Shown piece after piece: positions 5,401 to 61,271 of a stretch of DNA of 64,000 bases; the first letter of the stretch is position 1; every line of letters starts with the position of its first letter. Source of the stretch: Macrostomum hystrix (Eukaryota; Animalia; Platyhelminthes); contig CATNEN010000041.1 in the NCBI GenBank assembly GCA_950097015.1, forward strand, positions 1,488,001 to 1,552,000. Reading direction: 5' to 3'. Below the pieces are notes generated by a model. It was not told where the DNA came from, ran no database searches, and saw nothing but the letters and a program-made list of their open reading frames with translations. Made by a program: the position numbers and the translations under genes.

Positions 5401-8400
5401 CTGAACCCTGCCTTGCTCTCCCTGAACCCTGCCTTGCTCTCCCTGAACCCTGCCTTGCTCTCCCTGAACCCTGCCTTGCTCTCACTGAACCCTGCCTTTT
5501 TACTTTTCAGTTTGACACGTCCGCAACGGCTCTCATCATGACATCGCAGGATAAGCAGGTTAATATAACTCCTATTAGCGTTTGTTGCACCTCGATTTGA
5601 TCTTGTAAAGCTATGCATCGCAACTTTCACGTGGCGCATTGTGATTCACAACTTCTTGTATCTCTCACCTGCAGCTCAAAATGATCACAAAACTCTGTTT
5701 CAGTCATTTTACGAAGAAGTTGTGAACGGAACACAACTGATTGAGAGCAGGTATGCTTACCTTAATAATGTGCTAGTGAAGTATCAACGGTTAGAGATTG
5801 TCAGCTTTGGCTAAATAATCTACAATTCCAGCCTTCATCATCACCTGATTGAATACCTAAATGCGGAGATTGTGCTGCAGACCATCACCTGCGTGTCCAC
5901 CGCGGTTGGCTGGCTGCATAACACCTTCCTGGGTGTGCGGCTGCCCAAGAATCCTGCGTACTACCGTCAGTCCAGTAAACTGGCTTCACACTAAACTGAA
6001 CCCTTACTGAACTGGAGCATTCCCGACTTAAACCCTTGCCGACTTGAACCCTCCTGAACCCTTAACGACCTGAACCCTTCCCGACCTGAACCCTTAACGA
6101 CCTGAACCCTTAACGACCTGAACCCTTAACGACCTGAACCCTTAACGACATGAACCCTTAACGACCTGAACCCTTAACGACATGAACCCTTAACGACCTG
6201 AACCCTTAACGACCTGAAACCTTCCTGATCTGAACCCTTCCTGATCTGAACCCTTCCTGATCTGAACCCTTAACGACCTGAAACCTTCCTGATCTGAACC
6301 CTTCCTGATCTGAACCATTCCCGACCTGAACCCTTCCCGACCTGAACCCTTAGCGGCCTGAAACCTTCCCGACCTGAACCCTTCCCGACCTGAACCCTTA
6401 ACGACCTGAAACCTTCCTGATCTGAAACCTTCCCGTCCTGAACCCTTCCCGACCTGAACCCTTAACGACCTGAAACCTTCCTGATCTGAAACCTTCGCGT
6501 CGTGAACCCTTCCCGACCTGGAGCATTCCCTACCTGGAGAATTCCCGTCCTGAACCCTTATCCAAAACGCTATTTTCTCTAAAGGCTCTGACAGCTCTGG
6601 AGACTCGGGTTGGGCGGAGCGCCTGACGCTGGACCATCTGCAGCAGCTGGGGCAGCTGCAGCTTATCTCCGTCAGCGGGTTCGACTCTGGCTGCGATGTC
6701 GGCGCTGTCCGAGTGTCGCCCAGCCCGGCCGGCCGGCTGATGGCCCGGCACTGCGTGAAGTTCGCCAGCATGCGGCGTATCTGCGAGCTGCCGCCGGACG
6801 CCTCGCTGGAGGCGCTGACTCGCGTTGTTGCCGACTGCCTGCAGTTGGAGGCGGCGGAGGGCGGCGCAGGCAGCGCTGGCGGCGATGCTGCTCTTCGGGC
6901 GTCGGACAGGCGGCCGCTCAACCAGCTGGCCAAGCGCATCCGCTTCCGCCCGGCCGGGCCTGGTGGGGTGAAGACCGCGGCCGACAAGGCGCTGGTGCTG
7001 CTGCAGGCCGAGTTCGCCGGCGAGGCCATAGCCGACTTCTCGCTGGCGCAGGACGCGCAGCGCCTAATGGCCCTGGGTGGCCGGCTGACCCGCTGCCTGG
7101 TGGACGTCTGGTGGGACAGAGGCGCCTTCGGCACCCTCATGGCGTGCGTCGTGCTCAACAAGTGCTTCAAGGTGCGGTCTCGCTATGAAGTCTCGCTTTG
7201 CCGTTCCGAAATTTGTGATGGTAGATGTACTTATAGTAGGTGTGATAGTAGATGTACTTATAGTAGGTGTGATGTTAGATGTACTTATAGTAGGTGTGAT
7301 AGTAGATGTACTTATAGTAGGTGTGATGTTAGATGTACTTATAGTAGGTGTGATAGTAGATGTACTTATAGTAGGTGTGATGTTAGATGTACTTATAGTA
7401 GGTGTGATAGTAGATGTACTTATAGTAGGTGTGATGTTAGATGTACTTATAGTAGGTGTGATGGTTGATGTACTTATAGTAGGTGTGATAGTAGATGTAC
7501 TTATAGTAGGTGTGATGTTAGATGTACTTATAGTAGGTGTGATGTTAGATGTACTTATAGTAGGTGTGATGGTTGATGTACTTATAGTAGGTGTGATGGT
7601 AGATGTACTTATAGTAGGTGTGATGGTTGATGTACTTATAGTAGGTGTGATGGTATATGTACTTATAGTAGGTGTGATAGTAGATGTACTTATAGTAGGT
7701 GTGATGGTATATGTACTTATAGTAGGTGTGATGGTAGATGTACTTATAGTAGGTGTGATGTTAGATGTACTTATAGTAGGTGTGATGGTTGATGTACTTA
7801 TAGTAGGTGTGATGGTAGATGTACTTATAGTAGGTGTGATGGTATATGTACTTATAGTAGGTGTGATGGTAGATGTACTTATAGTAGGTGTGATAGTAGA
7901 TGTACTTATAGTAGGTGTGATGGTATATGTACTTATAGTTGGTGTGATGGTAGCAGGTGTGATTGTTGCAGGTGTGATTGTTGTAGGTGTGATTGTTGTA
8001 GGTGTGATTGTTGTAGGTGTGATTGTTGTAGGTGTGATTGTTGTAGGTGTGATTGTTGTAGGTGTGATTGTTGTAGGTGTGATTGTTGTAGGTGTGATTG
8101 TTGTAGGTGTGATTGTTGTAGGTTTAAGCACTATGCAGTTCTGGTCCATAATTTAACTGCTCCTTCACACCGACTCTCTTAGGCACGCCTGTGGGAGAAC
8201 TCGGACCAGGTGAGCCGCCAGCTGCCGGGCATCGGGCCGGTGCTGGCCGCCGCCCTGACCGCAGCCGGCTACGCCAGCTTCGCCAGGCTGGCCACCGCTA
8301 CGCCGCACGAGCTCGAGACCGCGGCCGGTCGTCGGCCTCCCTTCGGCGCCTCTGTGCTGACTGCTGTGAACGGCCTCCCCCGCTACGTGCTGGCTGTGGA

Positions 8401-31000: not shown

Positions 31001-34000
31001 GGACCAAAGTCCAGGTGGGCCTTGAAGGTCCAGCAGTCCGTCTAGAAAAAGCTAGGTGACCACCGAAGACGCGGATGATGCAGGCACGCTCGGGTGACAT
31101 GCTGATAAATTTTGAAGGCCTAGCAAGGCCGCACTGAGGCACAGTGCTAATCTGTGTATAAGGGGAAGCGAAATACACTAGCTCTTACGGGAAAAGTCTG
31201 ACTTCGGCCAGAACCTGTTGAATATCTCGACGGTCTGTAGGGCTGGCGACTTGGTTCTTGTTTCAGAAGATGCGCAACAAAAAGTTGGCGCGTGTTCTTG
31301 AGTTTCGTGCGCTTGCATTGCTCCGTTCGGGTGCAGCAAAAATGATTGTCTGGGGGGAACTCCGTCTTCTGTTGTCCTGATAGTTCTACTGCTAATGCTG
31401 CTTGTGGTGCTGGGTGTAGTGCAGCAAATGGGTAATTCCAGTAAGGTGTTAACTCTGTTGGTTTCTCCCACTCCCTAATCGCACAGGTGAAGGCTACCAC
31501 GGAGCCAAAGTTCATCCGCCTGTTCCTAGTGTCCATTGTGTCCTGCCTGGAGCTGATGAATCGCTCGCCGGACCTGTGGTGCGAGTGGATCGACAAGGCG
31601 CTGTTCGCAGACTCGTTCTACCCGCTGCCTAACGACACTGTGGAGGCCTGCGACATGGTGGCCAAGTGCGAGCTAGCCGACCAAGTCAATGAGCTGCTGC
31701 AGCTGCTTTTCGGCGTGTTCAGCAACATCCAGGACCGCTGGATGAAGTGGCACGACCTCAAGCTGATGGAGTCCAAGGTCATCCTGCAGAGCCTGACGGT
31801 GCTGGAGCAGCACATGCTGGCGATGTTCAGCCAACCGCTGCAGCTCAGCGTTGTTGAAGGCTTTCTGAACTGTTTGTTCGCCTTCCTGCGCCAGCCGCAC
31901 CTCATCTATGAGTCCTTCCCCTCTGACAAGCGCGACCGGCACGTCAGCCTGATGGGCGAGGACCCCCGCCTCGCCGCATTCGAGCTTGTCAAGCGGGCCT
32001 GGGCCCGGCTGTCTCCCGAAGACCAGCTGAAGCTGGTGCCGCCTCTGGTCCATCTGCTGGTGGAGGTGAGGCCTTTGCTACGGCTTTTTCTATACATATC
32101 GGCTAGTTGCTAATCTGCACCAAACCCCACCTGACCCAGCTCAGTATTTGATTCTGTATTACGATATCATTTGCTCTGGTAAGTTCTGGATTAGCAACCG
32201 CGCATCAACCCCCCTCCACCGCCCGCAGGTGTCGCTGCAGCCGGAGCAGCGTCTCCGCGAGGAGTGCACCCGCATGCTGGTGGAGCTGCTGCGCTGCGAG
32301 TTCTCCCAGCAGAAGAGCTTTCGCTGCGTGAGCAAGGAGATCACCTTCATCATGGACAAGCTGGTGGAGAAGCACGGCAACAAGGAGTACGTGGAGCAGT
32401 TCTGCGACTACTTCCAAAAAGCCCTGTCCAGCCTGGTCAAGAGCAAGGAGAGCTACAAAATTGACAAGGCCTTCGTCTTTCTGAGCGAAATGAAGCGCCA
32501 GATGAACTTGCTGCTGGAGTACCAGACCCTCATCGCCGACGAGCTGCCCGAGAACCGCATGTTCGCCATCTACAACCTGTACAAGTTCTACAAGGACATC
32601 GACAAGGAGGAGATGTGCAACCGCTACCTGTACAAGCTTTGCCAGCTGCATGAGACGGCGGGCAACTGGGCTGAAGCCGGCTGTGTGCTGCTGCTGCAGG
32701 CCAAGTACCTGGAGTGGGGTGCCGACGCTCAGCTCAGCATCAGCAAAGACGCGCTGCAGAAGAAGTACCAGAACTGCCGCAGCCAAGGCGAGCTCAAGGT
32801 GTGGCTGCTTTTGGTGCTGTCAATCTCAATCCTTTCGAACTCTAGAATCCCCATCTCAAACCTTTCGAACTCTAGAATCCCCATCTCAATCCTTCCCAAC
32901 TCTAGAATCCCCAATTCAATCCTTCCCAACTCTAGAATCCTCAAAATAAATCATTCCTAACTCTAGAATCCCCAAACTAAATCATTCCCAACTCTAGAAT
33001 CCCCATCTCAATCCTTCCCAACTCTAGAATCCCCATCTCAATCCTTCCCAACTCTAGAATCCCCATCTCAATCCTTCCCAACTCTAGAATCCCCATCTCA
33101 ATCCTTCCCAACTCTAGAATCCCCATCTCAATCCTTCCCAACTCTAGAATCCTCAAAATAAATCATTCCCAACTCTAGAATCCCCAAACTAAATCATTCC
33201 CAACTCTAGAATCCCCATCTCAATCCTTCCCAACTCTAGAATCCTCAAAATAAATCATTCCCAACTCTAGAATCCCCAAACTAAATCATTCCCAACTCTA
33301 GAATCCCCATCTCAATCCTTCCCAACTCTAGAATCCCCATCTCAATCCTTTCCAACTCTAGAATCCCCATCTCAATCCTTCCCAACTCTAGAATCCCCAT
33401 CTCAATCCTTCCCAACTCTAGAATCCCCAAACTAAATCCTTCCCAACTCTAGAATCCCCATCTCAATCCTTCCCAACTCTAGAATCCCCATCTCAATCCT
33501 TTCCAACTCTAGAATCCCCATCTCAATCCTTCCCAACTCTAGAATCCCCAAACTAAATCCTTCCCAACTCTAGAATCCTCATCTCAATCCTTCCCAACTC
33601 TAGAATCCCCATCTCAATCCTTTCCAACTCTAGAATCCCCATCTCAATCCTTCCCAACTCTAGAATCCCCATCTCAATCCTTCCCAACTCTAGAATCCTC
33701 ATCTCAATCCTTCCCAGCTCTAGACTCCTCATCTCAATCCTTCCCAACTCTAGACTCCCCATCTCAATCCTTCCCAACTCTAGAATCCCCATCTCAATCC
33801 TTCCCAACTCTAGAATCCTCATCTCAATCCTTCCCAGCTCTAGACTCCTCATCTCAATCCTTCCCAACTCTAGACTCCCCATCTCAATCCTTCCCAACTC
33901 TAGAATCCCCATCTCAATCCTTCCCAACTCTAGAATCCTCAAAATAAATCATTCCCAACTCTAGAATCCCCAAACTAAATCATTCCCAACTCTAGAATCC

Positions 34001-37000
34001 CCATCTCAATCCTTCCCAACTCTAGAATCCTCAAAATAAATCATTCCAAACTCTAGAATCCCCAAAATAAATCATTCCAAACTCTAGAATCCCCAAACTA
34101 AATCATTCCCAACTCTAGAATCCCCATCTCAATCCTTTCCAACTCTAGAATCCCCATCTCAATCCTTCCCAACTCTAGAATCCTCATCTCAATCCTTCCC
34201 AGCTCTAGACTCCTCATCTCAATCCTTCCCAACTCTAGACTCCCCATCTCAATCCTTCCCAACTCTAGAATCCCCATCTCAATCCTTCCCAACTCTAGAA
34301 TCCTCATCTCAATCCTTCCCAGCTCTAGACTCCTCATCTCAATCCTTCCCAACTCTAGACTCCCCATCTCAATCCTTCCCAACTCTAGAATCCCCATCTC
34401 AATCCTTCCCAACTCTAGAATCCTCATCTCAATCCTTCCCAGCTCTAGACTCCCCATCTCAATCCTTCCCAACTCTAGAATCCCCATCTCAATCCTTCCC
34501 AACTCTAGAATCCTCATCTCAATCCTTCCCAACTCTAGACTCCCCATCTCAATCCTTCCCAACTCTAGAATCCCCATCTCAATCCTTCCCAACTCTAGAA
34601 TCCTCATCTCAATCCTTCCCAACTCTAGAATCCCCATCTCAATCCTTCCCAACTCTAGAATCCTCAAAATAAATCATTCCCAACTCTAGAATCCCCAAAC
34701 TAAATCATTCCCAACTCTAGAATCCCCATCTCAATCCTTCCCAACTCTAGAATCCTCAAAATAAATCATTCCAAACTCTAGAATCCCCAAACTAAATCAT
34801 TCCCAACTCTAGAATCCCCATCTCAATCCTTTCCAACTCTAGAATCCCCATCTCAATCCTTCCCAACTCTAGAATCCCCATCTCAATCCTTCCCAACTCT
34901 AGAATCCTCATCTCAATCCTTCCCAGCTCTAGACTCCTCATCTCAATCCTTCCCAACTCTAGACTCCCCATCTCAATCCTTCCCAACTCTAGAATCCCCA
35001 TCTCAATCCTTCCCAACTCTAGACTCCTCATCTCAATCCTTCCCAACTCTAGACTCCCCATCTCAATCCTTCCCAACTCTAGAATCCCCATCTCAATCCT
35101 TCCCAACTCTAGAATCCTCATCTCAATCCTTCCCAGCTCTAGACTCCTCATCTCAATCCTTCCCAACTCTAGACTCCCCATCTCAATCCTTCCCAACTCT
35201 AGAATCCCCATCTCAATCCTTCCCAACTCTAGAATCCCCATCTCAATCCTTTCCAACTCTAGAATCCCCATCTCAATCCTTCCCAACTCTAGAATCCTCA
35301 TCTCAATCCTTCCCAACTCTAGAATCCTCATCTCAATCCTTCCCAACTCTAGAATCCCCATCTCAATCCTTCCCAACTCTAGAATCCTCATCTCAATCCT
35401 TCCCAACTCTAGACTCCTCATCTCAATCCTTCCCAACTCTAGAATCCCTATCTCAATCCTTCCCAACTCTAGAATCCCCATCTCAATCCTTCCCAACTCT
35501 AGAATCCTCATCTCAATCCTTCCCAACTCTAGACTCCTCATCTCAATCCTTCCCAACTCTAGAATCCCTATCTCAATCCTTCCCAACTCTAGAATCCCCA
35601 TCTCAATCCTTCCCAACTCTAGAATCCTCATCTCAATCCTTTCCAACTCTAGAATCCTCATCTCAATCCTTCCCAACTCTAGAATCCCCATCTCAATCCT
35701 TCCCAACTCTAGAATCCCCATCTCAATCCTTCCCAACTCTAGAATCCTCATCTCAATCCTTCCCAGCTCTAGACTCCTCATCTCAATCCTTCCCAACTCT
35801 AGACTCCCCATCTCAATCCTTCCCAACTCTAGAATCCCCATCTCAATCCTTCCCAACTCTAGAATCCCCATCTCAATCCTTTCCAACTCTAGAATCCCTA
35901 TCTCAATCCTTCCCAACTCTAGAATCCTCATCTCAATCCTTCCCAACTCTAGACTCCTCATCTCAATCCTTCCCAACTCTAGAATCCTCATCTCAATCCT
36001 TCCCAACTCTAGACTCCTCATCTCAATCCTTCCCAACTCTAGAATCCCCATCTCAATCCTTCCCAACTCTAGAATCCCTATCTCAATCCTTCCCAACTCT
36101 AGAATCCCCATCTCAATCCTTCCCAACTCTAGAATCCCCATCTCAATCCTTCCCAACTCTAGAATCCTCATCTCAATCCTTCCCAACTCTAGACTCCTCA
36201 TCTCAATCCTTCCCAACTCTAGAATCCCCATCTCAATCCTTCCCAACTCTAGAATCCCTATCTCAATCCTTCCCAACTCTAGAATCCCCATCTCAATCCT
36301 TCCCAACTCTAGAATCCTCATCTCAATCCTTCCCAACTCTAGACTCCTCATCTCAATCCTTCCCAACTCTAGAATCCCTATCTCAATCCTTCCCAACTCT
36401 AGAATCCCCATCTCAATCCTTCCCAACTCTAGAATCCTCATCTCAATCCTTTCCAACTCTAGAATCCCCATCTCAATCCTTCCCAACTCTAGAATCCTCA
36501 TCTCAATCCTTCCCAACTCTAGAATCCTCATCTCAATCCTTTCCAACTCTAGAATCCCCATCTCAATCCTTCCCAACTCTAGAATCCTCATCTCAATCCT
36601 TCCCAACTCTAGAATCCCATCTCAATCCTTTCCAACTCTAGACTCCCCATCTCAATCCTTCCCAACTCTAGAATCCCATCTCAATCCTTTCCAACTCTAG
36701 AATCCTCATCTCAATCCTTCCCAACTCTAGAATCCCCATCTCAATCCTTCCCAACTCTAGAATCCTCATCTCAATCCTTCCCAACTCTAGAATCCCCATC
36801 TCAATCCTTTCCAACTCTAGAATCCTCATCTCAATCCTTCCCAACTCTAGAATCCCAATCGTAAGCCTTCCCAATTTTAAATCACAAAAATTTCTTCGAC
36901 TTTATTACTTAGTGTTAAAGTCTCCTAACCAGGAATTCCAGTTAATTTCGTGCCCTGAATTTATAATGCCAACAGCTGAATTCCCTTCTCACACGGCTTC

Positions 37001-45240: not shown

Positions 45241-48200
45241 TCATTTACGGAGAAACCGATGCCTCAGAAGCTGCCTCGCGTCCGCTCGCTTCTTCGTCTC
45301 CGTCGCGACGCATCGACTGTAGAAGTCGCTCAGACTGTCGGAGAAGTCCGTGGGCAGACGGGGCATGCCGCGGTCTCGAATCTGTTCAGCGAGCTCTCGA
45401 GTGCTCAACTCGAAATTCGGAGGCTTCAAGGACAGCATCTCGAACACGGTGCAGCCGAACGCCCAGACGTCGGTCTGTGGTCTGTACTCCGCGCTGATGT
45501 CATCGGCAGTCAGCAGCTCAGGAGCCAGAAAGTGAGGACAACCGCAAGAAGGTCCGACTGCAGAGCCTAATTCGTTGCACTCTACCGCATGTGAGAAGTT
45601 AATCAGCTTGATGTCGCCCAGATGAGTGAGCAGGAGGCTGGAGCACCGGATGCTCCTGTGCAGAATGGCTGGCTTCTGGCAGTGCAGATATTCCATGGCT
45701 GAACAGATCTGAAATATTCGATTCAAGGCCCTCCTACTGACACTCGAAAGCGACTTCATGGTGAGATGTCTCCTTAATCTCTCCAACGCACCGCTTCCTA
45801 TGTGCTGATTCGCTAAACGCAGGCTACCAATAACAGCCTAACACGTACCACGCTATATATACAACAAGCGAAAGTGCGAAGCAGTCAACCGTTTCCCACT
45901 ACCTTAACTTCTTCCAACTCCTAGCCTCGCTAACAAACCAATCTAAAGTTTTAACAGTCAACAAGACTACAGACTCAATTATTAGACAACAGGCCTTAGC
46001 CTTGAACTGCTGAATATTCGACGAATCTGATAAGTACCACGATCCTGACTGCTTCTTACTTGCTCACTATCATTGTGCATTGCTTCAACAACACCAGTAA
46101 TTCGACTGTAAATATTATATAACACCTAAAAGAAGGTTTAACACCGCCGGAAACCTTGAGTCTAACTTACCGCTCATTGACCTAAACTAGGATGTACTTC
46201 ATTAGAAGCGAGAACTAGGAACCATAAACAATACAAGTATACACCATAAAGTATATCAATGGCTTCGTTTCAATGGGGGCGTGGCACTGCCTCCCCATTT
46301 CAGCAATGGGCCTCTACTTTGTGGTTGTTGCTAAGCAAGACTTTGGAGAGTGGGTGAGTTGGTTTCAAGAAACATAGATCTAATCTGGGAACGGGAACTC
46401 ACCTGAAGTGAAAACTTCATCACGGCTGCCTCGTCGAACGGCTTCTGCTGACATCGCATGAAGTCCCAGAGGGATTGGCCAGCAACGAGTTCAGTGAAGA
46501 TTCGGAGTTCGATTTCTGAGGGGCTCTCGAGCTTGAGAAACAGTAGGATGTTCGAGTGCCTGATACTGCTCAGGAGGCTGTACCCCAGCTTCGCATTCTC
46601 AATGAATTCTTTGAGTTTCTGCTGGCTCTCCATCGCTCTGTAGGTTTTGCCGTCAATCACCTTGACAGCCACAGTCTGCTGGCTGTCAGTGAATGCCTTG
46701 TAAACCTTGCTGGATCTACCTGCTGCAATGAGCTGAGCAGTCCCTCTATCTAGAAAGAAGTCCCAGCTGATGAACTCATTGTCGAGGGCGCCGGCAGTGG
46801 CGTTGTGAGCGTCCGGCTTCAGGAAGCGGTGCCGCAGCAGCTCCGCGGTGTCCGCTCGCCTCCTCGGCTCCTTCTCCACACACCGGCTGTAGAAATTCCT
46901 CAGGGGCTTGGAGACCCTGGCTGGCAGCTGGGGCATGTCTTGCCCGGTGACTTTCAGCGCAATGAGCTCCTTCCTGACCTTCCCATTGGGAGGCTGCATG
47001 GATAGCATCTCAAACACAGCGCAGCCGAGACCCCAGATGTCAGTCTTTGGAGAGTTTACCTGCCTAGATAGCGAGATGATCTGCTCGGGAGCCAAATAGC
47101 GCGCCCTGTAAATATCAGTTGAGTCAGTCTCATCCTGACTGAGGAGTGTCCTGATGGGGGCATCGATATCAGAGCCAACCAGTTTGATGACGCCCGCATA
47201 GGTGAGCATGATGCTGCGGCAGTTGATACCGTTGTGGGTGAGGCTGGGTTCGCAACTGTGCAGGAAGTCAAGCGCTGAGCAGATCTGCAATGCAGCTTAT
47301 TAGATTAATTCAGGTAATGAGCCAACAAAATTTGTGTTTCAATTAATCAAGCAGCTGAAACTCACCTGCTTGGAGAATTTCTTCACGGCGGGCTCTTCAA
47401 ACGGTCTCCGCAGGCGCTGCATCAGTTCGTGGAGACTGTGGCCTGCGATGAGCTCAGCAAAGATGCAGACCCGCTCGCGAGTGTGCTCGAATTTGAGAAA
47501 TCTTGCTATGCTCTGATGCCTGATGCTCTTCCACACCTTCAGGTCAGACTTGAATGTTTGCATCGCGTGCTGGCAGTCGGATGAGCCAGCCTCGTCCTCT
47601 GGAAGATAGATCACCTTCACGGCTGCTGTCTGGTGCCTGTCTGTGAATGCTATGTGGGTCCTGCTGAATCGACCTTCACAGATGACAGTTTTGAAGCCTG
47701 AATAGTCCAGGAGAAAATCCCAGCGGGTGAACTGACTGTCTATGACGTTGCAGTCATCAGTTCTGACGGCAGCGTCTGTGAGGAACCGGTGACCCAGCAG
47801 CTCCGTAATGTCCGCTCGCTTGTCCGATTGTCTATTCACGCAGCGTCGATAGAAGTTGCTCAGGCTGCACGAGGCACCGACTGGCAGCTGCGGCATGTGC
47901 TGCGCGGTCAACCGCAGCGCCAGCAGCTCCCTCCTGACTCTACTGTTTGGAGGCCGCATCGACAGCATCTCGAACAAGGAGCAACCGAGCGCCCAGACGT
48001 CAGTCTTGGCGGTGTGCAAAGGACGGCCTTCATTTGTAAACTGCTCAGGCGCCAGAAAAAGCCAAGCCCGCGCATCAGCCTCCTGGGGTTGCTGGGCCTG
48101 CGCCTTTTCAATAGCCGCCCTGGCAACACCGAAGCCAATCAATTTGATGACGCCCAGGCGAGTGAGCACAATGTTGGAGCAGTTGATATCCCTGTGCAGC

Positions 48201-48991
48201 ACAGCTGGGCTGCTGCTGTGAAGAAAACTGAGCGCAGTGCAAATCTGAGGAGGGAAAACAATAGAAAGAGCACGGGCTATTTCTAGATATTCAACGCTTC
48301 TCGTCGGGGTTTTAGGTGTCAAAAACCCTAATGTAAACATCCATTTTCTATTATCGGCTATTATTATTGATTAGATTGCATTGATAATATTGCTAATTGT
48401 TCTTCGGCAACAAATCGCAGATTATGTCGAGAATGTTAACTCGGACGGCTTAAAAAATGAGTTCATCGTAAATGACGGAAAATCCAACTGGTGGACTTTC
48501 ACGAGAGTCGGTCGTTCGGTCTGAAACATTCTCCGTGGTCTTTTCCCAGGGGAAAAGTAGCGAAGTATTTCTACTGTTAATTAGCAAGATTTAGATTTCT
48601 TACTTACCTGCAGTACAAATTCTTTTACTTGTGACTCCTCAAATGGCTTCTGCTGCTCATTCATCAGCTCCAGGAGGCTGTCTCCAGAGATGAGCTCAGT
48701 GAAGATATAGAACTCCAGGCCATCGGCTGAGCACTCGAACTTCAGAAACTGGATCACATTCGGGTGCCTGATCCTGCCCAGGATTTCGCATTCCGCAGTT
48801 CCCAGGCCGATCGCCTTGCGAAGGCTTCTCTGGCTCGGCGCACCGACCACTGGGACAACTTCAACTGCCACGGTCTGCTTGCGGTCGGTCCTGGCCTTGA
48901 ACATCCTGCCGAATCCGCCAGCCCAGACCCGCTGCTTCCTTCCCTTGACGATCGCGAATTTCCAAGCTCTGAAGTCGGGGTCCGCTTCCAT
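45241..48991 (-). CDS. Protein with three tandem STE11/MAP3K-like kinase domains, all predicted pseudokinases (about 870 aa)
   Basis: Exons 48991-48608, 48244-47366, 47284-46403 and 45708-45241; all introns are GT-AG, phase 0, at ..Q|IC. No internal stops. Each domain retains APE, TD(V/I)W..GC and HRFL. Possible extra upstream exons (49606-49523, about 49900-49660) joined through the acceptor at 49003-49004. Confidence 0.88.
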
Positions 48992-51244: not shown

Positions 51245-51327
51245 ATCCCAAAGTAATGTAGCCTCGTGGCGGAATCGAGCTCAGGGACCTTCGCGCTAGA
51301 GGCAAGCATGTTAGACCACTCCTGCCC
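51245..51327 (-). mobile_element. SINE family B head fragment
   Basis: Reverse complement GGGCAGGAGTGGTCTAAC..TTGCCTCT..CCCTGAGCTCGATTCC..GAGGCTACATT resembles the head of 13519-13600. Confidence 0.5.
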
Positions 51328-51756
51328 ATATTTTCGGCGGTAGTGGAACAGGACACTGGTCATTTAATAAGTAGTCGGAATGAATAATACGAGCTACACA
51401 TAGTTAAATAAGTCTTCTGAATCATATTTAAAATCAACTGCGTTTTAAACGCTCGAATATAAGGAAGAGAAAGCCTTAAGATTTTTTAGATTTGGATTAA
51501 AAAATTGCGAAATGCGAAAATTCCTAGAATGAAAAATGTTTTCATCCATAGAATTTTAAATCACAATAGGAGTAAGCATGAATAGATTTGATGAATTTAG
51601 CTAAAACAGCCCCATCACACCGTTGAGCTATCGAGACGACTCAACCTATTTATGCTAATTAAGCGAAATTGCTCTATTGTTCTAGCAGCTCGAGTTTTAA
51701 CATTGTCACAATTCAGCAGAAAAGCGAAAAACATAATTGTACAGAAGCGCTGGAAA

Positions 51757-54700
51757 TGCACCAGTGACTCAGATCAGTCCTCCAAATGAGATGTTCCTTC
51801 CTACCTACAAGGGGTGTACTGAAAGTTTTGAGATGCACCAGTGACTCAGATCAGTCCTCCAAATGAGATGTTCCTTCCTACCTACAAGGGGTGTACTGAA
51901 AGTTTTGAGGTGCACCAGTGACTCAGATCAGTCCTCCAAATGAGATGTTCCTTCCTACCTACAAGGGGTGTACTGAAAGTTTTGAGATGCACCAGTGACT
52001 CAGATCAGTCCTCCAAATGAGATGTTCCTTCCTACCTACAAGGGGTGTACTGAAAGTTTTGAGATGCACCAGTGACTCAGATCAGTCCTCCAAATGAGAT
52101 GTTCCTTCCTACCTACAAGGGGTGTACTGAAAGTTTTGAGATGCACCAGTGACTCAGATCAGTCCTCCAAATGAGATGTTCCTTCCTACCTACAAGGGGT
52201 GTACTGAAAGTTTTGAGATGCACCAGTGACTCAGATCAGTCCTCCAAATGAGATGTTCCTTCCTACCTACAAGGGGTGTACTGAAAGTTTTGAGATGCAC
52301 CAGTGACTCAGATCAGTCCTCCAAATGAGATGTTCCTTCCTACCTACAAGGGGTGTACTGAAAGTTTTGAGGTGCACCAGTGACTCAGATCAGTCCTCCA
52401 AATGAGATGTTCCTTCCTACCTACAAGGGGTGTACTGAAAGTTTTGAGATGCACCAGTGACTCAGATCAGTCCTCCAAATGAGATGTTCCTTCCTACCTA
52501 CAAGGGGTGTACTGAAAGTTTTGAGATGCACCAGTGACTCAGATCAGTCCTCCAAATGAGATGTTCCTTCCTACCTACAAGGGGTGTACTGAAAGTTTTG
52601 AGATGCACCAGTGACTCAGATCAGTCCTCCAAATGAGATGTTCCTTCCTACCTACAAGGGGTGTACTGAAAGTTTTGAGATGCACCAGTGACTCAGATCA
52701 GTCCTCCAAATGAGATGTTCCTTCCTACCTACAAGGGGTGTACTGAAAGTTTTGAGGTGCACCAGTGACTCAGATCAGTCCTCCAAATGAGATGTTCCTT
52801 CCTACCTACAAGGGGTGTACTGAAAGTTTTGAGATGCACCAGTGACTCAGATCAGTCCTCCAAATGAGATGTTCCTTCCTACCTACAAGGGGTGTACTGA
52901 AAGTTTTGAGATGCACCAGTGACTCAGATCAGTCCTCCAAATGAGATGTTCCTTCCTACCTACAAGGGGTGTACTGAAAGTTTTGAGATGCACCAGTGAC
53001 TCAGATCAGTCCTCCAAATGAGATGTTCCTTCCTACCTACAAGGGGTGTACTGAAAGTTTTGAGATGCACCAGTGACTCAGATCAGTCCTCCAAAGGAGA
53101 TGTTCCTTCCTACCTACAAGGGGTGTACTGAAAGTTTTGAGATGCACCAGTGACTCAGATCAGTCCTCCAAATGAGATGTTCCTTCCTACCTACAAGGGG
53201 TGTACTGAAAGTTTTGAGGTGCACCAGTGACTCAGATCAGTCCTCCAAATGAGATGTTCCTTCCTACCTACAAGGGGTGTACTGAAAGTTTTGAGATGCA
53301 CCAGTGACTCAGATCAGTCCTCCAAATGAGATGTTCCTTCCTACCTACAAGGGGTGTACTGAAAGTTTTGAGATGCACCAGTGACTCAGATCAGTCCTCC
53401 AAATGAGATGTTCCTTCCTACCTACAAGGGGTGTACTGAAAGTTTTGAGATGCACCAGTGACTCAGATCAGTCCTCCAAATGAGATGTTCCTTCCTACCT
53501 ACAAGGGGTGTACTGAAAGTTTTGAGATGCACCAGTGACTCAGATCAGTCCTCCAAATGAGATGTTCCTTCCTTCCTACAAGGGGTGTACTGAAAGTTTT
53601 GAGGTGCACCAGTGACTCAGATCAGTCCTCCAAATGAGATGTTCCTTCCTTCCTACAAGGGGTGTACTGAAAGTTTTGAGGTGCACCAGTGACTCAGATC
53701 AGTCCTCCAAATGAGATGTTCCTTCCTACCTACAAGGGGTGTACTGAAAGTTTTGAGATGCACCAGTGACTCAGATCAGTCCTCCAAATGAGATGTTCCT
53801 TCCTACCTACAAGGGGTGTACTGAAAGTTTTGAGATGCACCAGTGACTCAGATCAGTCCTCCAAATGAGATGTTCCTTCCTACCTACAAGGGGTGTACTG
53901 AAAGTTTTGAGATGCACCAGTGACTCAGATCAGTCCTCCAAATGAGATGTTCCTTCCTTCCTACAAGGGGTGTACTGAAAGTTTTGAGGTGCACCAGTGA
54001 CTCAGATCAGTCCTCCAAATGAGATGTTCCTTCCTACCTACAAGGGGTGTACTGAAAGTTTTGAGATGCACCAGTGACTCAGATCAGTCCTCCAAATGAG
54101 ATGTTCCTTCCTTCCTACAAGGGGTGTACTGAAAGTTTTGAGGTGCACCAGTGACTCAGATCAGTCCTCCAAATGAGATGTTCCTTCCTACCTACAAGGG
54201 GTGTACTGAAAGTTTTGAGGTGCACCAGTGACTCAGATCAGTCCTCCAAATGAGATGTTCCTTCCTACCTACAAGGGGTGTACTGAAAGTTTTGAGATGC
54301 ACCAGTGACTCAGATCAGTCCTCCAAATGAGATGTTCCTTCCTACCTACAAGGGGTGTACTGAAAGTTTTGAGGTGCACCAGTGACTCAGATCAGTCCTC
54401 CAAATGAGATGTTCCTTCCTTCCTACAAGGGGTGTACTGAAAGTTTTGAGGTGCACCAGTGACTCAGATCAGTCCTCCAAATGAGATGTTCCTTCCTACC
54501 TACAAGGGGTGTACTGAAAGTTTTGAGGTGCACCAGTGACTCAGATCAGTCCTCCAAATGAGATGTTCCTTCCTACCTACAAGGGGTGTACTGAAAGTTT
54601 TGAGATGCACCAGTGACTCAGATCAGTCCTCCAAATGAGATGTTCCTTCCTACCTACAAGGGGTGTACTGAAAGTTTTGAGATGCACCAGTGACTCAGAT

Positions 54701-55151
54701 CAGTCCTCCAAATGAGATGTTCCTTCCTACCTACAAGGGGTGTACTGAAAGTTTTGAGGTGCACCAGTGACTCAGATCAGTCCTCCAAATGAGATGTTCC
54801 TTCCTACCTACAAGGGGTGTACTGAAAGTTTTGAGGTGCACCAGTGACTCAGATCAGTCCTCCAAATGAGATGTTCCTTCCTACCTACAAGGGGTGTACT
54901 GAAAGTTTTGAGATGCACCAGTGACTCAGATCAGTCCTCCAAATGAGATGTTCCTTCCTACCTACAAGGGGTGTACTGAAAGTTTTGAGATGCACCAGTG
55001 ACTCAGATCAGTCCTCCAAATGAGATGTTCCTTCCTTCCTACAAGGGGTGTACTGAAAGTTTTGAGATGCACCAGTGACTCAGATCAGTCCTCCAAATGA
55101 GATGTTCCTTCCTACCTACAAGGGGTGTACTGAAAGTTTTGAGGTGCACCA
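51757..55151. repeat. 77-bp satellite, exactly 44 units, each containing a mariner TIR
   Basis: TGCACCA at 51757 and 55145 (3388 = 44 x 77). Each unit contains TA+CAAGGGGTGTACTGAAAGTTTTGAG. Confidence 0.98.
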
Positions 55152-56442
55152 AAACCAAAAGTGTTTGAGGCAAATTTTCTGTCACTAGTTTTCAAAGTAG
55201 TTGCCACCAGCTTGTACGTATTTCCTCATTCGGTGAAACCACTGCGTCCAGGCTCCAGCCCACTGTTCTTCAGGCACTGCTGAAACCACCCGCTCGAACT
55301 CGATTCTTGCTGCTTCAGGGCTCGTGTAGGATGGTCGTAGGGGGCGAGTGGGGTCAGTGGCTAACGTCGCTGCCTCGCACTCCAAAGGACGCTAGTTTGA
55401 TTCACCCTTCAAGTCACGATTAATTTCGTTACTTGTTCGGGGGGTTTGGACAGTAGCGACCGGCGGAGGTGCACCATATTTCGTGCAATCAAAGCTTGAA
55501 AAATAGCTTCGCTCCTACCTTTCTGTGTGCCTGTTCTGCGTTGTATGAGTTATGTGCGTTGGCGCTGGGGCGTTAGACCTTGCGGGGGGTGGCTGGGGGG
55601 CGGGTGTACACCGCCGCGCGCTCATCTAGATTTCCGTCAGCGCGATTGGATAAAGTGTACACTCGCCACCCGGCCCCCCCCTGAGGACTGATTTCTATCA
55701 GCCTTCCGCCCCGGCTTGGTCTGCTCTGTGCGTGTGCGGGCCTGGGGTGAGAGGCACTCCGGCTGCCGCCCCCTTCCCCGCTTGGCTTGCTGCTGTGTGT
55801 GTGTGAGGTGCCTGCTCAGGGGAGGCGGCGCGATGGGCGGCTTTCGCCTAGTTCGCCGGCCTGGGGGCATGCCGTTCCTGAGTTTGTGCGTCAGGTGCCC
55901 CAGGCCCCCCTGCAAAGTAAGTAAGTAAGGATGGTCGTAACCGCTGCCGATCCAATGCCAAGAGCCTCTCTGATCTCGGCACAGGTCAGTCGCCGGTCTT
56001 CGTCGATCATCCTCCGGACGGCAGCGATGTTTTCGTCCGTGACAGCAGAAGCTGGACGTCCCGACCGAGGCTCGTCATCAAGGCTGCTCCGGCCCCACTT
56101 GCATTCGCTGTACCACCGAAAAACGGTGGCACGTGAAGGGGCTTGGTCTCCAAAGGCAGCACGGAAACTTTCAACGCATTGCTCTTGCGTGAGACCTTTA
56201 CGCTGGTCGTAAACTATCATGGCACGAAAGTCGCGGTTTGTCAACTCCATTGGAGCTGAAGAGTGACTGTGAAAAATTGACAAGAGCGCAAAGGCTGAAA
56301 ATGTATACTCAATCATTTTGGTAGAGTATGTACATTAAGGTGGTATAGTATGTACATTAAGGTGGTAGAGTATGTACATTAAAAGGCGTGCAGCTGCGAC
56401 TTATAAGTCAGACGTATCTCAAAACTTTCAGTACGCCCCTCA
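55119..56442 (-). mobile_element. Internally deleted mariner transposon interrupted by a SINE
   Basis: 25-bp TIRs (3 mismatches) flanked by TA at 55117-55118 and 56443-56444. ATG at 56250: MELTNRDFRAMI..TVFRWY..LDDEPRSGRP (HTH region). C-terminus ..WFHRMRKYVQAGGNYFEN* at 55337-55185. The DD34D core is absent. Confidence 0.9.
55340..55927 (+). mobile_element. tRNA-derived SINE, family A (588 bp), with a 12-bp TSD
   Basis: TSD AGGATGGTCGTA at 55328-55339 and 55928-55939; (GTAA)n tail; homologous to 21500-22070. Confidence 0.9.
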
Positions 56443-56844
56443 TACAAATGCTCCAGCTTGTCAGTGGGTAGGCAAACTCCGGGCCCCATTCCAACATCTA
56501 CTCTGACAACCGTTCTAATCTCACGGGTCTCATCTCTACAGTGTCTAGCCTCTCCCCGTATCGCATTTTTCTACGGAATTAAATCCTCTCATTCCAAGCA
56601 GCCCCGAGGTTGCCGACTCTAGCCGTAATCTCAGCACGAACCCTAAAATGATCGATATTGATATGTTGAAAGAGTAATGCTTTTTGTCGAGCTATGTTAT
56701 TATTGGACATTTTCAATAAGTATTTTTCAATAGTATTTTCAATACCCACTGCCTACTTCACGACTGCTCCCAAACCGAATGACCGATTTTCGTCAAAGTC
56801 CACCATGTGAATCAACATTTTCCGCCCTTTACGATCAACTAACT

Positions 56845-59800
56845 TGTCAAGCCGTGCTCAGGAGTATAAGGCAAGACTGCCCGTAGGCTTGGTTTGGGTT
56901 AGTAGCGAATTTAGTTTATTAGTCACGATGTTTCACGATACACTTGCATATATATATAAGTAGACGAGTCAACAAGGCTTAAAAGTCAACAGGTGTTGAG
57001 TACATCAATAATCAATATTCAGGCTGCGTACATTGGGTCAGAGTGCGGTTGGCGCGCAGGCCTGCAGATCTACCACAGTTCACTTGCTTAACACAGTTCA
57101 CGGTTCATTCACGGCTCAAACCCCGGCACGTCATCTCCCCCCTTCGAACCGCTCGGGCGGCACGCCCCGATTCGCACGGAGGTTGTAGCTCGGTCTCTGG
57201 GGAGTCGCGGCCGGTGACGGCACTCTGCCACTGGCCGCTGGCGGCGGATCTGCGGTCTCCCCTGGCGCGCTTGCCTGGGTCAAGGACGCAGGCATGTTTT
57301 CATGTCGCGCTTCAGGCAAGTCGGCGGGTCTCGGAGCAACTTCGTGGCTGACTGCGGCTGTCGCAACGTCTCCATTGCCGCCGGCTTCGTGCCGACGCAG
57401 TTGGTCTAGGTGGGCGAGCGTGACCCGGTCACCCTGTCGCATGATCAGCGCCGTGTTGGACCCTTTTTGCGCCAGGAACTCCGCCTTCTCCGGTGTGGCA
57501 CTCGGCGTTGGAGCGTACCAGACCTCAGAGCGGATCGCTGTCTTCATGGTGATGGGGTTTCGCAGCTGCCTTCCCATTAGTTGCGCCGGGCTGAACTCCC
57601 TTCCGGCGTGCGGTACACATCGGTAGTTCAGTAGGATCCGTGCCAGGAACGCGTCGTACGGCTCCTGCTGATCCCAGCCCGCCGAGGCCACCTTGATTGT
57701 CTGCACCATTCGCTCGGCCAGGCCGTTGGACTGGGGATGATATGGTGGGGTTTTCACAGCGCGGCAGCCGATTCTGTGCAGCCAGCTCATCAACCCCTCA
57801 TCATGGAACTCTGCAGCATTGTCACTCACCAGGGTTCTCGGCACTCCGTTGCGGGCGAAGACCTCCTGGAGGACCCGCCTGACGGTGGCGGCGCTCTTGT
57901 CGGGCACTCGGATAGCCTCCGGCCAGGCAGACATGGCGTCGACCAGGATCAGCAGGAGCCCGACCTTCGGAACGTGAGCGTGGTCCATGTGCACGCGCCC
58001 CCAAGGCTCAGACTCGGCGGGCCATTGGTGGACACTGCTGTGACTACTTTGACGTTGCTTGGCGCAGGTGTGGCAGGCACGGACGAATCCTTCGACGTCA
58101 CCGCAGTAACCTGGCCACCAGACGGAGTTGCGGACCAGCGCTCGAGTGCTCGTGGCGCCCGGATGCGCCCCGCTGTGCACCAATTCCAGGACGCGACTGC
58201 GTAGTGAAGCAGGAATGACCGGGCGATCGCCGTAGCACACCACCGAGCCGTCTAGAGTGAGCGCATGTCGAATTGCTTTGAATTGCCGTTCCGCAGGCGA
58301 GCAACCCGACCAACGGTTTCCAGCTATCCTTCGAGTGATGTCCGCTAGCAGTCTATCGCGCTTTGTCTCCTCTGCCAGCTCAGTCCAGCCGATGACGCTT
58401 TCACCGGCCCAATGCACCAGGTGTTGTTGGGGTGCCGCCTCATATGGATCGTCCGGGACGTCAGCGAAGTCAAGACGAGACAACGCATCGGCGTGCGGGA
58501 TGTCGACTCCGCGGGCGTACTCAATAGCGAAGTCAAATCCCATGAGGCGGATCGCCCAGCGCAGGATGCGGGCATTGGCGACTTTAGGGAGCTGCTGCCG
58601 TGCCCCGAACAGAAACTCGAGAGGGCGGTGGTCGGTTCGCAGAGTGAAGCGCTTGCCCAGTAGGAACTGACGGGACCTCTCCATTGACCACACAATCGCC
58701 AGCGCCTCCCGTTCGATGTTGGAGTAGCGTGTCTCTGCCTCCGTCAACCGCCTGCTGAAGTAGATGACGGGATGACCTTCTTGCGTGAGCACGGCGGCCA
58801 CCGCCTTCTCACTGGCGTCGGTCGTGAGCGTTGTTTCCTTTGTCCGGTCGTATGGCTGGATGATCGGGCTGGAGCTCAGGAGCTTCTTTAGCTGGTGGAA
58901 GGCCGCTTCCTGTGCAGTTGTCCAAGTGAACTCCACTCCCTTCTTGCGCAGCTGGTTCAGGGGCTCGACGATGTGCGCATAATTGTTGACGAACCTTCCG
59001 AAGAAATTGCAGAGGCCGAGGAAGGACTCCAACTGGCGACGGTCGCGTGGTGCAGAGATTTCTTTGATCTTGCTGACCAGTCCAGGGTCCGGAGAGATTC
59101 CTTCTGCACCGATTCTGTAGCCGAGGAACTTGACGCTCTTGGCGCCCAAGTTGGACTTGGCGAGATTTATGTTCATTCCGGCTGCCTGGAGGATCTTAAT
59201 TACTTCATCGACTTTGACTTTGAGATCTTCGCTGGAGCGACCTCCGAGCAGAATATCGTCTTGATAGATGACCTTGCCGTTCACCTCCTCAAGGGTAGTC
59301 TCCATGGCCTTTTGAAAGATGGCGGATGCTGACTTGAGGCCCGGCACGAGTCGGGTGTAGCGAAACAGACCGAGTGGGGTCGCAATCGTAGTGACTTCCC
59401 TGCTCTTCTCCTCGAGTTCAATCTGTAGATACGCGTCAGATAGGTCGAGGGTCGCGAAGTCAGTCATTCCGGCGACATCCGAGAAGATGGTCTCGACGGT
59501 TGGCATTGGATAGGTGTCTCCGCACACTTGATGATTGACCCCCGCCTTGTAATCGGCACAAATTCTGATGTTGCCGTTGGGTTTGAGGACGCAGACGATT
59601 GGTGACGCCCACTCGCTACCGCCTTCGGTCACTGGTTCAATTATTCCTTCAGCCTGGAGGCGCTTCAGCTCTTGGTTGACGCGGTCGCGCAGGTGCAGCG
59701 GCACCGCTCTGGCTGCGCAGTAGAATGGCTTGGCACCTTCGATCAGCTTGATTCTGGCTTGGAAACCCTTCAGGCAATTGAGGTGCTGTACTGCAGTGCC

Positions 59801-61271
59801 TTGGCCACCGACTGTCTGCCTCTCAGAGTTCCAATCCAGGTTGTCGAGGCCCAACAGCCCGTGTGACTTGTGTGCTGCAGTGACAACCAAGTCGACAGTG
59901 CGGAACTTGTCTTTATCATTCCACGTTGCTGTGAACTCGCCCAGGGTCTTGATTATTGATCCATCAAATTGCCTCAGGATTCGCTTGGACTTCCTCAGCG
60001 CTGGACGCCCGAGCATCTCCCAGTGGCCCCTGGGAATGAGGCTTACGTCGGCGCCTGTGTCCACTTGCATCTGCAGCTCTTTGCCGTTGATCTTGACGCG
60101 CCGGAAGATGCCTTTTCGCTCCTTGTTCTCCGGTCTGATGACGAAGACGTTGGCGGCATCTGGCTTCGGGGCGGCATCATCGTCCTCCTCCCAGGTCTCC
60201 AAGTGCACAGTGCGGGACCTGCAAACGGCTGCGTAGTGGTTTTTCTTGTTGCAGGTGGTGCACCTTTTGCCGAAGGCGGGGCATGAGCCCTGCTGGTGCG
60301 AACCGCCACAGTATTGGCACTTCGTCCTGGTTGTGTGCCTCGGCGATCTGGTGTCCGGAGGAAGCTGTGGAGGTGCGGCGCGCCGACCTGCATAGGCGAT
60401 GCTTGACTCGGTGGTGACGGTGGGCCCGGTGCCGGCGTTGTAGTAGCGAATCTGCTCCAACTGCTCAAGCTCTTGCAGCACATCGGTCAGCAGCATGTCG
60501 ATGCCCTGCATCCTCTCCAGCAGTCTGCGCTTGTGGTCCACGGAGGCAAGACCGTCCACGAGCCTCATGGTGATGAGTTCGTCCTCACAGGTCTGTTTCG
60601 AGCCTAGCTTCTCAAAACTGCACGAGGCAGCAGCTGCTCGGAGCCGGCGGTAGTACGATGCGACGCCTTCGCTCGGATCCTGCCTGAGGGAGAGGAATTT
60701 CACCCTCTCGGCAATGGTGAGGCGCCGCTTGGGCCGAATGGTTGCATCGATGATGTCGCGGATCTGTGCGAATGTTTTGGTCTCCAGGCTGTCTGGGGCA
60801 GCCATGAGGGTCAGGGTTCTCAGTGCCTTGAGGCCTGCCCTCGAGAGGAATAGATCAGTGATCTGGTGTTCCTCTTCCGAATCCTTCAGTTTCTTGGTCC
60901 GTGCAGCGGCCGCGAAACTGAGCAGCCAGGCTTCGGCTGTGTCTGGATCTTCCAGGTTTAGTTCAGATGCTTGCGACGCCATTGTCAAGCCGTGCTCAGG
61001 AGTATAAGGCAAGACTGCCCGTAGGCTTGGTTTGGGTTAGTAGCGAATTTAGTTTATTAGTCACGATGTTTCACGATACACTTGCATATATATATAAGTA
61101 GACGAGTCAACAAGGCTTAAAAGTCAACAGGTGTTGAGTACATCAATAATCAATATTCAGGCTGCGTACATTGGGTCAGAGTGCGGTTGGCGCGCAGGCC
61201 TGCAGATCTACCACAGTTCACTTGCTTAACACAGTTCACGGTTCATTCACGGCTCAAACCCCGGCACGTCA
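56845..61271 (-). mobile_element. Full-length Ty3/gypsy LTR retrotransposon (Mag-clade-like), 4427 bp
   Basis: 289-bp LTRs at 56845-57133 and 60983-61271 with no difference found by eye, TG..CA ends, 5-bp TSD TAACT (56840-56844, 61272-61276), PBS TGGCG.. next to the 5' LTR and PPT GAAGGGGGGAGA next to the 3' LTR. Confidence 0.97.
57131..60982 (-). CDS. Gag-Pol polyprotein (1283 aa): Gag with double CCHC, protease, RT, RNase H, integrase
   Basis: CQYCGGSH..CPAFGKRCTTCNKKNH; VDTGAD; ICADYK; DLSDAY; IYQDDILL; TTDAS; H..HPG..CHTC; MDH..SDNAAEF..NGLAERMV. Domain order PR-RT-RH-IN; no stops. Confidence 0.97.
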   Translation of the reverse strand: MASQASELNLEDPDTAEAWLLSFAAAARTKKLKDSEEEHQITDLFLSRAGLKALRTLTLMAAPDSLETKTFAQIRDIIDATIRPKRRLTIAERVKFLSLRQDPSEGVASYYRRLRAAAASCSFEKLGSKQTCEDELITMRLVDGLASVDHKRRLLERMQGIDMLLTDVLQELEQLEQIRYYNAGTGPTVTTESSIAYAGRRAAPPQLPPDTRSPRHTTRTKCQYCGGSHQQGSCPAFGKRCTTCNKKNHYAAVCRSRTVHLETWEEDDDAAPKPDAANVFVIRPENKERKGIFRRVKINGKELQMQVDTGADVSLIPRGHWEMLGRPALRKSKRILRQFDGSIIKTLGEFTATWNDKDKFRTVDLVVTAAHKSHGLLGLDNLDWNSERQTVGGQGTAVQHLNCLKGFQARIKLIEGAKPFYCAARAVPLHLRDRVNQELKRLQAEGIIEPVTEGGSEWASPIVCVLKPNGNIRICADYKAGVNHQVCGDTYPMPTVETIFSDVAGMTDFATLDLSDAYLQIELEEKSREVTTIATPLGLFRYTRLVPGLKSASAIFQKAMETTLEEVNGKVIYQDDILLGGRSSEDLKVKVDEVIKILQAAGMNINLAKSNLGAKSVKFLGYRIGAEGISPDPGLVSKIKEISAPRDRRQLESFLGLCNFFGRFVNNYAHIVEPLNQLRKKGVEFTWTTAQEAAFHQLKKLLSSSPIIQPYDRTKETTLTTDASEKAVAAVLTQEGHPVIYFSRRLTEAETRYSNIEREALAIVWSMERSRQFLLGKRFTLRTDHRPLEFLFGARQQLPKVANARILRWAIRLMGFDFAIEYARGVDIPHADALSRLDFADVPDDPYEAAPQQHLVHWAGESVIGWTELAEETKRDRLLADITRRIAGNRWSGCSPAERQFKAIRHALTLDGSVVCYGDRPVIPASLRSRVLELVHSGAHPGATSTRALVRNSVWWPGYCGDVEGFVRACHTCAKQRQSSHSSVHQWPAESEPWGRVHMDHAHVPKVGLLLILVDAMSAWPEAIRVPDKSAATVRRVLQEVFARNGVPRTLVSDNAAEFHDEGLMSWLHRIGCRAVKTPPYHPQSNGLAERMVQTIKVASAGWDQQEPYDAFLARILLNYRCVPHAGREFSPAQLMGRQLRNPITMKTAIRSEVWYAPTPSATPEKAEFLAQKGSNTALIMRQGDRVTLAHLDQLRRHEAGGNGDVATAAVSHEVAPRPADLPEARHENMPASLTQASAPGETADPPPAASGRVPSPAATPQRPSYNLRANRGVPPERFEGGR

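Follow-up and report, generated by a model that had tools for sequence, protein, structure and literature searches.

The window analysed here, a 64-kb stretch of Macrostomum hystrix DNA (contig 41, bases 1488001-1552000), contains a long tandem array that runs directly into a defective mariner transposon, which itself carries a SINE-like retroposon (Table 1). Tandem Repeats Finder reported the array with a period of 77 bp, 44.1 copies, 99% matches, 0% indels and a score of 6638. The array is 3396 bp long, or 44 x 77 + 8, the extra 8 bp being A/G-TGCACCA, and a cut in a fixed 77-bp register gave 44 head-to-tail units, each with no more than two differences from the consensus. Thus, both procedures bore out the original prediction of 44 copies of a 77-bp unit, with the start placed at 51756, and the absence of indels across 3.4 kb, which had also been predicted, agrees with the Tandem Repeats Finder result. 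Three sites vary across the whole array (unit positions 1, 32 and 48). At position 1, 30 units have A and 14 have G, and the terminal partial unit also has G; position 32 carries a T>G change confined to unit 18; and position 48 carries an A>T change in six units. Along the array, units are of the consensus type, have G at position 1 or T at position 48 or both, or have G at position 32.

Table 1. Positions of the array, the adjacent transposon and the features within them (numbered from the first base of the window)
Feature	Position	Strand	Remarks
Minisatellite array	51756..55151	+	44 x 77-bp units and a terminal 8 bp, GTGCACCA; Tandem Repeats Finder and fixed-register cut
Left 8-bp direct repeat, ATGCACCA	51756..51763	+	presumed original flank
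Left TA target-site duplication	55117..55118	.	repeated within every unit
Defective mariner copy	55119..56442	- (transposase strand)	from alignments with nine full-length copies of ~1.31 kb
Left terminal inverted repeat, 27 bp	55119..55145	+	doubles as the inverted repeat of the last unit
Right direct repeat, mariner-native	55144..55151	+	GTGCACCA here, ATGCACCA in the family; GAGATGCACCAAAACC in 9/9 other copies (alignment)
SINE-like retroposon inside mariner, ~588 bp	55340..55927	+	(GTAA)n tail; 96-98% identical to many dispersed copies
Remnant ORF, open, 119 codons	55894..56250	-	N-terminal helix-turn-helix region of the transposase in residues 1-107
22-bp unit x 2.9 in mariner 5' UTR	56319..56382	+	a single unit in other copies
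Right terminal inverted repeat, 27 bp	56416..56442	-	followed by TA at 56443-56444

The assembly was made from PacBio reads and polished with Illumina reads (PMC10468722), and short-read polishing of tandem arrays is difficult; moreover, the worms were pooled and residual heterozygosity is present (PMC10468722). The copy number and uniformity of the array could in principle be products of assembly or polishing. We consider this extremely improbable, as a 3.4-kb array lies comfortably within long-read length, assemblers are more prone to collapse such arrays than to inflate them, three variants in a non-periodic pattern and a perfect 77-bp register look real, and comparable arrays occur throughout the assembly.

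Each unit is a chimera of transposon and non-transposon sequence. It is composed of ATGCACCA, 44 bp of flank terminating in TA, and CAAGGGGTGTACTGAAAGTTTTGAG, which is bases 1-25 of the mariner inverted repeat. Counted otherwise, the same 77 bp comprise 44 bp of locus-specific flank through the TA and mariner bases 1-33, with every ATGCACCA that follows an inverted repeat serving both as the start of the next unit and as mariner positions 26-33. We established the limits of the transposon by alignment with nine full-length copies, each about 1.31 kb long and located on another contig. At the left end, similarity to these copies begins directly after the TA and the upstream sequence is unrelated in all of them; the boundary at the right end is equally sharp. 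The anatomy of the unit, which had been proposed from the window sequence, is thereby supported directly. Counting the element's own left inverted repeat, the array holds 44 copies of this transposon terminus.

The inverted repeat of the family, CGAGGGG(T/C)GTACTGAAAGTTTTGAGAT, was assigned a length of 27 bp on the basis of the ...GAGAT that is common to both family ends. The left end was predicted to match the right end, and it does, but over 27 bp (56416-56442) and not the 25 bp originally given. The two repeats differ at one position in the family and at three in the window copy, namely the T/C at position 8 that is shared with the family and two mutated bases in the terminal CpGs (left, CG>CA; right, CG>TG, read inwards). 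With a TA duplication and inverted repeats within the ~27-30 bp expected of mariners, the element has the structure of this group. Its relatives are better preserved. Four of the nine full-length copies have an intact reading frame of 353 residues, and the predicted protein contains the Pfam domains HTH_48 and Transposase_1 and aligns over its full length with the Mos1 transposase 3HOS (E = 3e-39). The catalytic residues (GDE, HDNA and D-34-D) identify a DD34D mariner of the Tc1/mariner superfamily. An exact-protein look-up of this transposase in public assemblies gave no match. Based on the intact frames in four of nine copies, the family may still be active.

The copy beside the array is far from intact. 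About 600 bp are missing from its interior, as indicated by a gap between the two parts matched in full-length copies, and a further 29 bp are deleted in the 5' UTR; no catalytic core is left. Apart from these rearrangements, it differs from the family majority at ~21 of 676 sites (~3%). The SINE-like insert is bounded by a 12-bp target duplication, AGGATGGTCGTA, at 55328-55339 and 55928-55939, and the other dispersed copies of this SINE each have a target duplication of their own, variable in sequence. Neither ARAGORN nor Rfam called a tRNA origin for the head of the insert, so we refer to it only as SINE-like. The last 12 residues of the remnant ORF are encoded by the tail of this insert, after which a stop follows.

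To determine the distribution of the unit, we searched the genome (220,453,370 bases in 42 contigs) with a 42-mer derived from the flank. At up to three mismatches, 44 matches were found in the array and none elsewhere; the reversed control of the pattern gave none at all. A query of two units had matches beyond the array in its mariner-end portion only, and these lay within other mariner copies. Thus, genome-wide occurrence of the unit independently of mariner ends, named in the original prediction as grounds against it, was not found. Mobilised mariner copies carrying flank-derived units were likewise absent from the whole genome at this stringency, and none of the 20 other ends of the family is duplicated, not even as two copies. 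The sequences directly adjoining the locus (51327-51755 and 56445-56733) occur once in the genome, and no paralogous empty site is present. Because the unit joins a mariner end to a flank that is found nowhere else, these results directly support formation of the array in place, later than insertion of the mariner. They also bear on its classification. The array was first described as a satellite; satellites in the strict sense form long arrays and/or occupy many loci, whereas this one is a single 3.4-kb locus with no match elsewhere, and we therefore call it a minisatellite.

The order of events can be resolved further. In the inverted repeat, position 2 carries a CG>CA change that is specific to this copy and present in 44/44 units, indicating that some time elapsed between insertion and expansion. 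The array has three variant sites in 3388 bp, compared with ~3% divergence in the neighbouring element; had the units decayed independently from the time of the insertion, about a hundred scattered changes would be expected in the array. It follows that the array is tens of times younger than the insertion or else is being homogenised continuously. The prediction of a very young array is in keeping with the scarcity of variants relative to the element, but homogenisation is the alternative.

A chimera of flank and transposon end bounded by a short direct repeat was the basis on which a microhomology origin had been proposed, and this configuration was supported. The heptamer TGCACCA, to which the proposal was tied, was located where predicted, both in the flank (51757) and in the element (55145). 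Nevertheless, comparison with other copies indicates that the array was probably founded on a direct repeat of 8 bp, ATGCACCA, rather than on TGCACCA. Outside this locus the ends of the family read GAGAT in 20/20 cases, left and right alike, and the element side reads TTTTGAG-ATGCACCA-AAACC in 9/9 other copies. Since this A belongs to the inverted repeat and is present at all 20 other ends, the ancestral base of the element is A, as in the flank, and the G form is derived. If the GA two bases upstream is included, the direct-repeat match extends to 10 of 11 bases.

This result is at odds with the earlier view that the A and G forms of the unit correspond to two parents, the flank and the element. 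The junctions in the array have A in 29/44 cases and G in 15/44. An exchange within TGCACCA would yield G junctions exclusively, whereas A is in the majority. Units with G number four in the left half of the array and ten in the right, element-proximal half, but the gradient toward the element that two parents would predict is not significant (Mann-Whitney p = 0.10). Thus, G is best read as a transition that first occurred either inside the array or in the copy belonging to the element, and then spread. On the flank side, we infer that the leftmost ATGCACCA represents ancestral sequence; the genome holds no progenitor with which to compare it. Counting against this reading, random truncation of the leftmost unit would leave a remainder of 8 bp or less ~10% of the time.

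The arrangement of variants is informative about how the array grew. Positions 1 (A/G) and 48 (A/T) are found in every one of their four combinations (AA, GA, AT and GT), and in the left half of the array G units recur every five to six units. The mixing of variants among units is shown directly, and it is as expected from repeated out-of-register exchange and conversion. A single rolling-circle burst would not leave this mixed pattern. We rejected slippage driven by hairpins: the unit folds worse than shuffled sequences on both strands (z = +1.7 and +1.5), and in a unit without hairpin potential structure-driven slippage is not indicated.

These observations suggest a four-step history. A DD34D mariner would first have inserted at a TA. 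The copy would then have decayed, with mutation of terminal CpG, loss of the middle and landing of the SINE inside it. In the third step, a 77-bp stretch across the left boundary of flank and transposon would have been duplicated between two copies of ATGCACCA, one in the flank and the other at element positions 26-33, presumably by replication slippage or unequal sister-chromatid exchange of the kind described by Haber and Louis. Finally, out-of-register exchange and conversion among units could have brought the array to 44 units, kept it uniform, and spread two new variants, G at position 1 and T at position 48. We regard it as very likely that the array is a private, single-locus minisatellite that originated at this site and is most probably neutral, neutrality being our working assumption.

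Birth of minisatellites between short flanking direct repeats is a known process (Haber & Louis 1998; Taylor & Breden 2000; the Alu-derived cases of Jurka & Gentles, summarised in PMC3389668), and in humans ~300 transposon-derived tandem repeats have flanking direct repeats, whose commonest length is 7 bp (PMC3389668). Three of the features by which such minisatellites are recognised are seen here. Units in the range of 10-100 bp lie head to tail at one locus (77 bp x 44), the array consists of whole units plus one extra direct repeat in the range of 5-10 bp, and variant units are interspersed and recombined. Consistent with this, the array shares with Haber-Louis minisatellites a unit of tens of base pairs, a direct repeat of 5-10 bp, a structure of N units plus one repeat, and growth attributed to slippage or unequal exchange. 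It is unlike them in having a chimeric unit of unique flank and DNA-transposon end, in a transposon boundary by which the array can be dated and which is proof that its unit formerly existed as a single copy, and in a host genome with an unusually high minisatellite load. In the other arrays of the window, the remainders of array length modulo period, worked out by hand, gave no consistent signal of short direct repeats; thus, the founding mechanism cannot be generalised from one array.

Tandem arrays built from transposon ends are also known, and they differ from the present case in scale and spread. The satellites Tetris/TIR-220 of Drosophila virilis and Xstir and miDNA4 of Xenopus derive from terminal inverted repeats, for which a route of microhomology-mediated repair and unequal recombination has been proposed (PMC9659126, PMC12628747). 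As in these satellites, the tandem units described here include a transposon terminal inverted repeat. However, Tetris/TIR-220, Xstir and miDNA4 are multi-locus, often element-borne and spread, and of satellite scale, whereas the array of M. hystrix is one unspread 3.4-kb locus outside the element. Moreover, over half of its unit is non-transposon sequence, with 33 of 77 bp from mariner and 44 bp from unique flank. Tc1/mariner elements are likewise tied to tandem arrays in the Bari1 cluster of Drosophila melanogaster and in the Mboumar mariner of a Messor satellite. The repeat unit of Bari1 is the entire element, in contrast to the 33 bp of mariner end used here; Mboumar inserted into a pre-existing satellite of the ant, whereas here the array is later than the insertion.

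The position of the boundary within the unit raises the question of whether the transposase took part. By this account, transposase cut or nicked the junction of TA and inverted repeat, repair of the break produced the first 77-bp duplication, either by fill-in and end joining or by microhomology-mediated end joining via ATGCACCA, and expansion came later. The cleavage site does lie inside the unit, 44 bp from one edge and 33 bp from the other, the family copies with an intact 353-residue DD34D frame are a possible source of enzyme, and small tandem duplications are a documented outcome of breaks with 3' overhangs (PMC8355091). That study makes no mention of transposons, and the polymerase-theta route yields larger tandem duplications with junction microhomology (PMC8355091). 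Against transposase seeding, 0/20 other ends of the family are duplicated, both terminal dinucleotides of the window copy are mutated, and minisatellites unrelated to transposons are ubiquitous, which makes a special trigger unnecessary. We also scored ~66 independent SINE 5' ends for short-period arrays. Arrays were present at 1/~20 mariner ends and 0/~66 SINE ends, a difference that is not significant (Fisher p ~0.23). Transposase seeding is thus unlikely, and slippage or unequal exchange between the ATGCACCA copies remains our preferred origin.

We also considered whether the array has a function. It contains 44 of the 65 recognisable inverted repeats of the family in the genome (68%), and these differ from the left end of the family only by G>A at position 2 and, in 15/44, by G for A at position 26. 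In a functional reading, the 44 TA-flanked repeats could act as a sink or decoy for transposase, perhaps with the participation of the remnant ORF that encodes DNA binding only, or as a breakage or small-RNA locus that modulates the activity of the family. The presence of intact transposase genes in the family and the fact that the local 119-codon ORF over the helix-turn-helix region has stayed open are compatible with such a role. However, excision scars and indels are absent from the array, no mariner copy elsewhere has flank-derived units, and the locus resembles dozens of nearby arrays without binding sites; we therefore judge a functional array to be very improbable. The suggestion that the array is a mobilisation hotspot finds no support for similar reasons: no copy elsewhere has extra units, and the array is without indel scars. 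A function in titration, as a hotspot or as a seed for small RNA, each raised by the original prediction, is accordingly unsupported. The two ideas can be combined, such that cleavage by a cut-and-paste transposase seeds minisatellites here and the block of 44 sites, together with the DNA-binding-only ORF, forms a local sink that damps a mariner family in which intact genes persist; we consider this combination decidedly unlikely.

The minisatellite reading fits every testable feature, and the locus is a clean new example of a known process that is rampant in this genome. It reveals neither a new mechanism nor a function. Its value lies in the fact that a unit spanning a transposon boundary makes the birth of a minisatellite unusually legible: the boundary proves a single-copy past, places insertion, CpG decay, duplication and expansion in sequence, and reveals the 8-bp direct repeat that was used. 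The locus is thus a useful marker for asking why Macrostomum genomes gather many private minisatellites. In addition, the concentration of two-thirds of the predicted binding sites of a possibly active mariner family at one locus would provide a cheap natural experiment for transposition studies in this species.

To place the array in its genomic context, we surveyed tandem repeats with periods of at least 7 bp. The window has 29 such arrays covering 28.6% of its 64 kb; 14 of them are at least 300 bp long, including one with a 30-bp unit x 135. The background sample, 89.6 kb in 26 independent loci on other contigs, contains 32 arrays that make up 12.9% of the sequence. With arrays so dense both in the window and in the genome sample, the involvement of a mariner end needs no special explanation; the array is probably a routine minisatellite birth of the Haber-Louis kind to which the mariner end is incidental. 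Tandem repeats and transposons also meet elsewhere. A higher-order repeat on contig 5, with a period of 1.2-1.47 kb, consists of nine complete copies of the SINE found in the window mariner, interleaved with stretches of a 20-bp minisatellite that are 600-880 bp long, and at another locus a SINE lies within a 21-bp minisatellite.

Within the defective mariner adjoining the 77-bp array, the reading frame that stays open (see table) encodes, in residues 1-107, the N-terminal helix-turn-helix DNA-binding region of the transposase; its last 12 residues come from the tail of the SINE-like retroposon inserted in the mariner and are followed by a stop. Judged from sequence, the predicted product would be a DNA-binding-only protein, encoded beside 44 putative binding sites, the inverted-repeat copies of the array. 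Two other changes were found in this mariner copy. A 22-bp piece of the 5' UTR is present 2.9 times at 56319-56382, in this copy only, and is a very small case of the same local tandem-duplication tendency. Both terminal CpG dinucleotides (55119-55120 and 56441-56442) have changed from CG to CA, read on the + strand, a signature usually left when methylated CpG is deaminated. The mutated bases adjoin the cleavage sites.

Copies of the SINE also meet minisatellites elsewhere in the genome. On contig 5, nine complete copies (loci L015-L023, G000:C5:2651406-2662920), all with 97.6% identity to the copy in the window, alternate with stretches of a 20-bp minisatellite of 600-880 bp each. Together, SINE and minisatellite form a higher-order tandem repeat with a period of 1.2-1.47 kb; therefore, the retroposon was swept into an array via exchange in the surrounding minisatellite. 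At a locus on contig 11 (L012:1434-2921; G000:C11:5405800-5409388), a SINE copy sits within a 21-bp minisatellite, which flanks it on either side, the reverse of the relation seen in the 77-bp mariner-end array.

The window (1-64000) is itself rich in tandem repeats, with 29 unrelated arrays of period at least 7 bp covering 28.6% of it; two of these are listed below with the neighboring genes and elements. The pol frame of the nearby LTR retrotransposon encodes protease, reverse transcriptase, RNase H, and integrase domains. Starting approximately 400 bp to the right of the mariner are repeats of about 100 bp with 100% identical matches at other genomic positions, among them pairs spaced 4.1 kb apart.

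Features in the window, in window coordinates
Feature	Position	Strand	Details
21 bp x 96 array	3486-5498		
30 bp x 135 array	32823-36874		GC skew down to -0.84
Adjacent ORFs, one protein kinase domain each	46331-48340	-	Pfam Pkinase, E = 4e-32 and 7e-26; parts of a tandem-kinase gene
Open ORF kept in defective mariner	55894-56250	-	119 codons
Ty3/Gypsy-type LTR retrotransposon	57131-61012	-	open pol frame, 1293 residues
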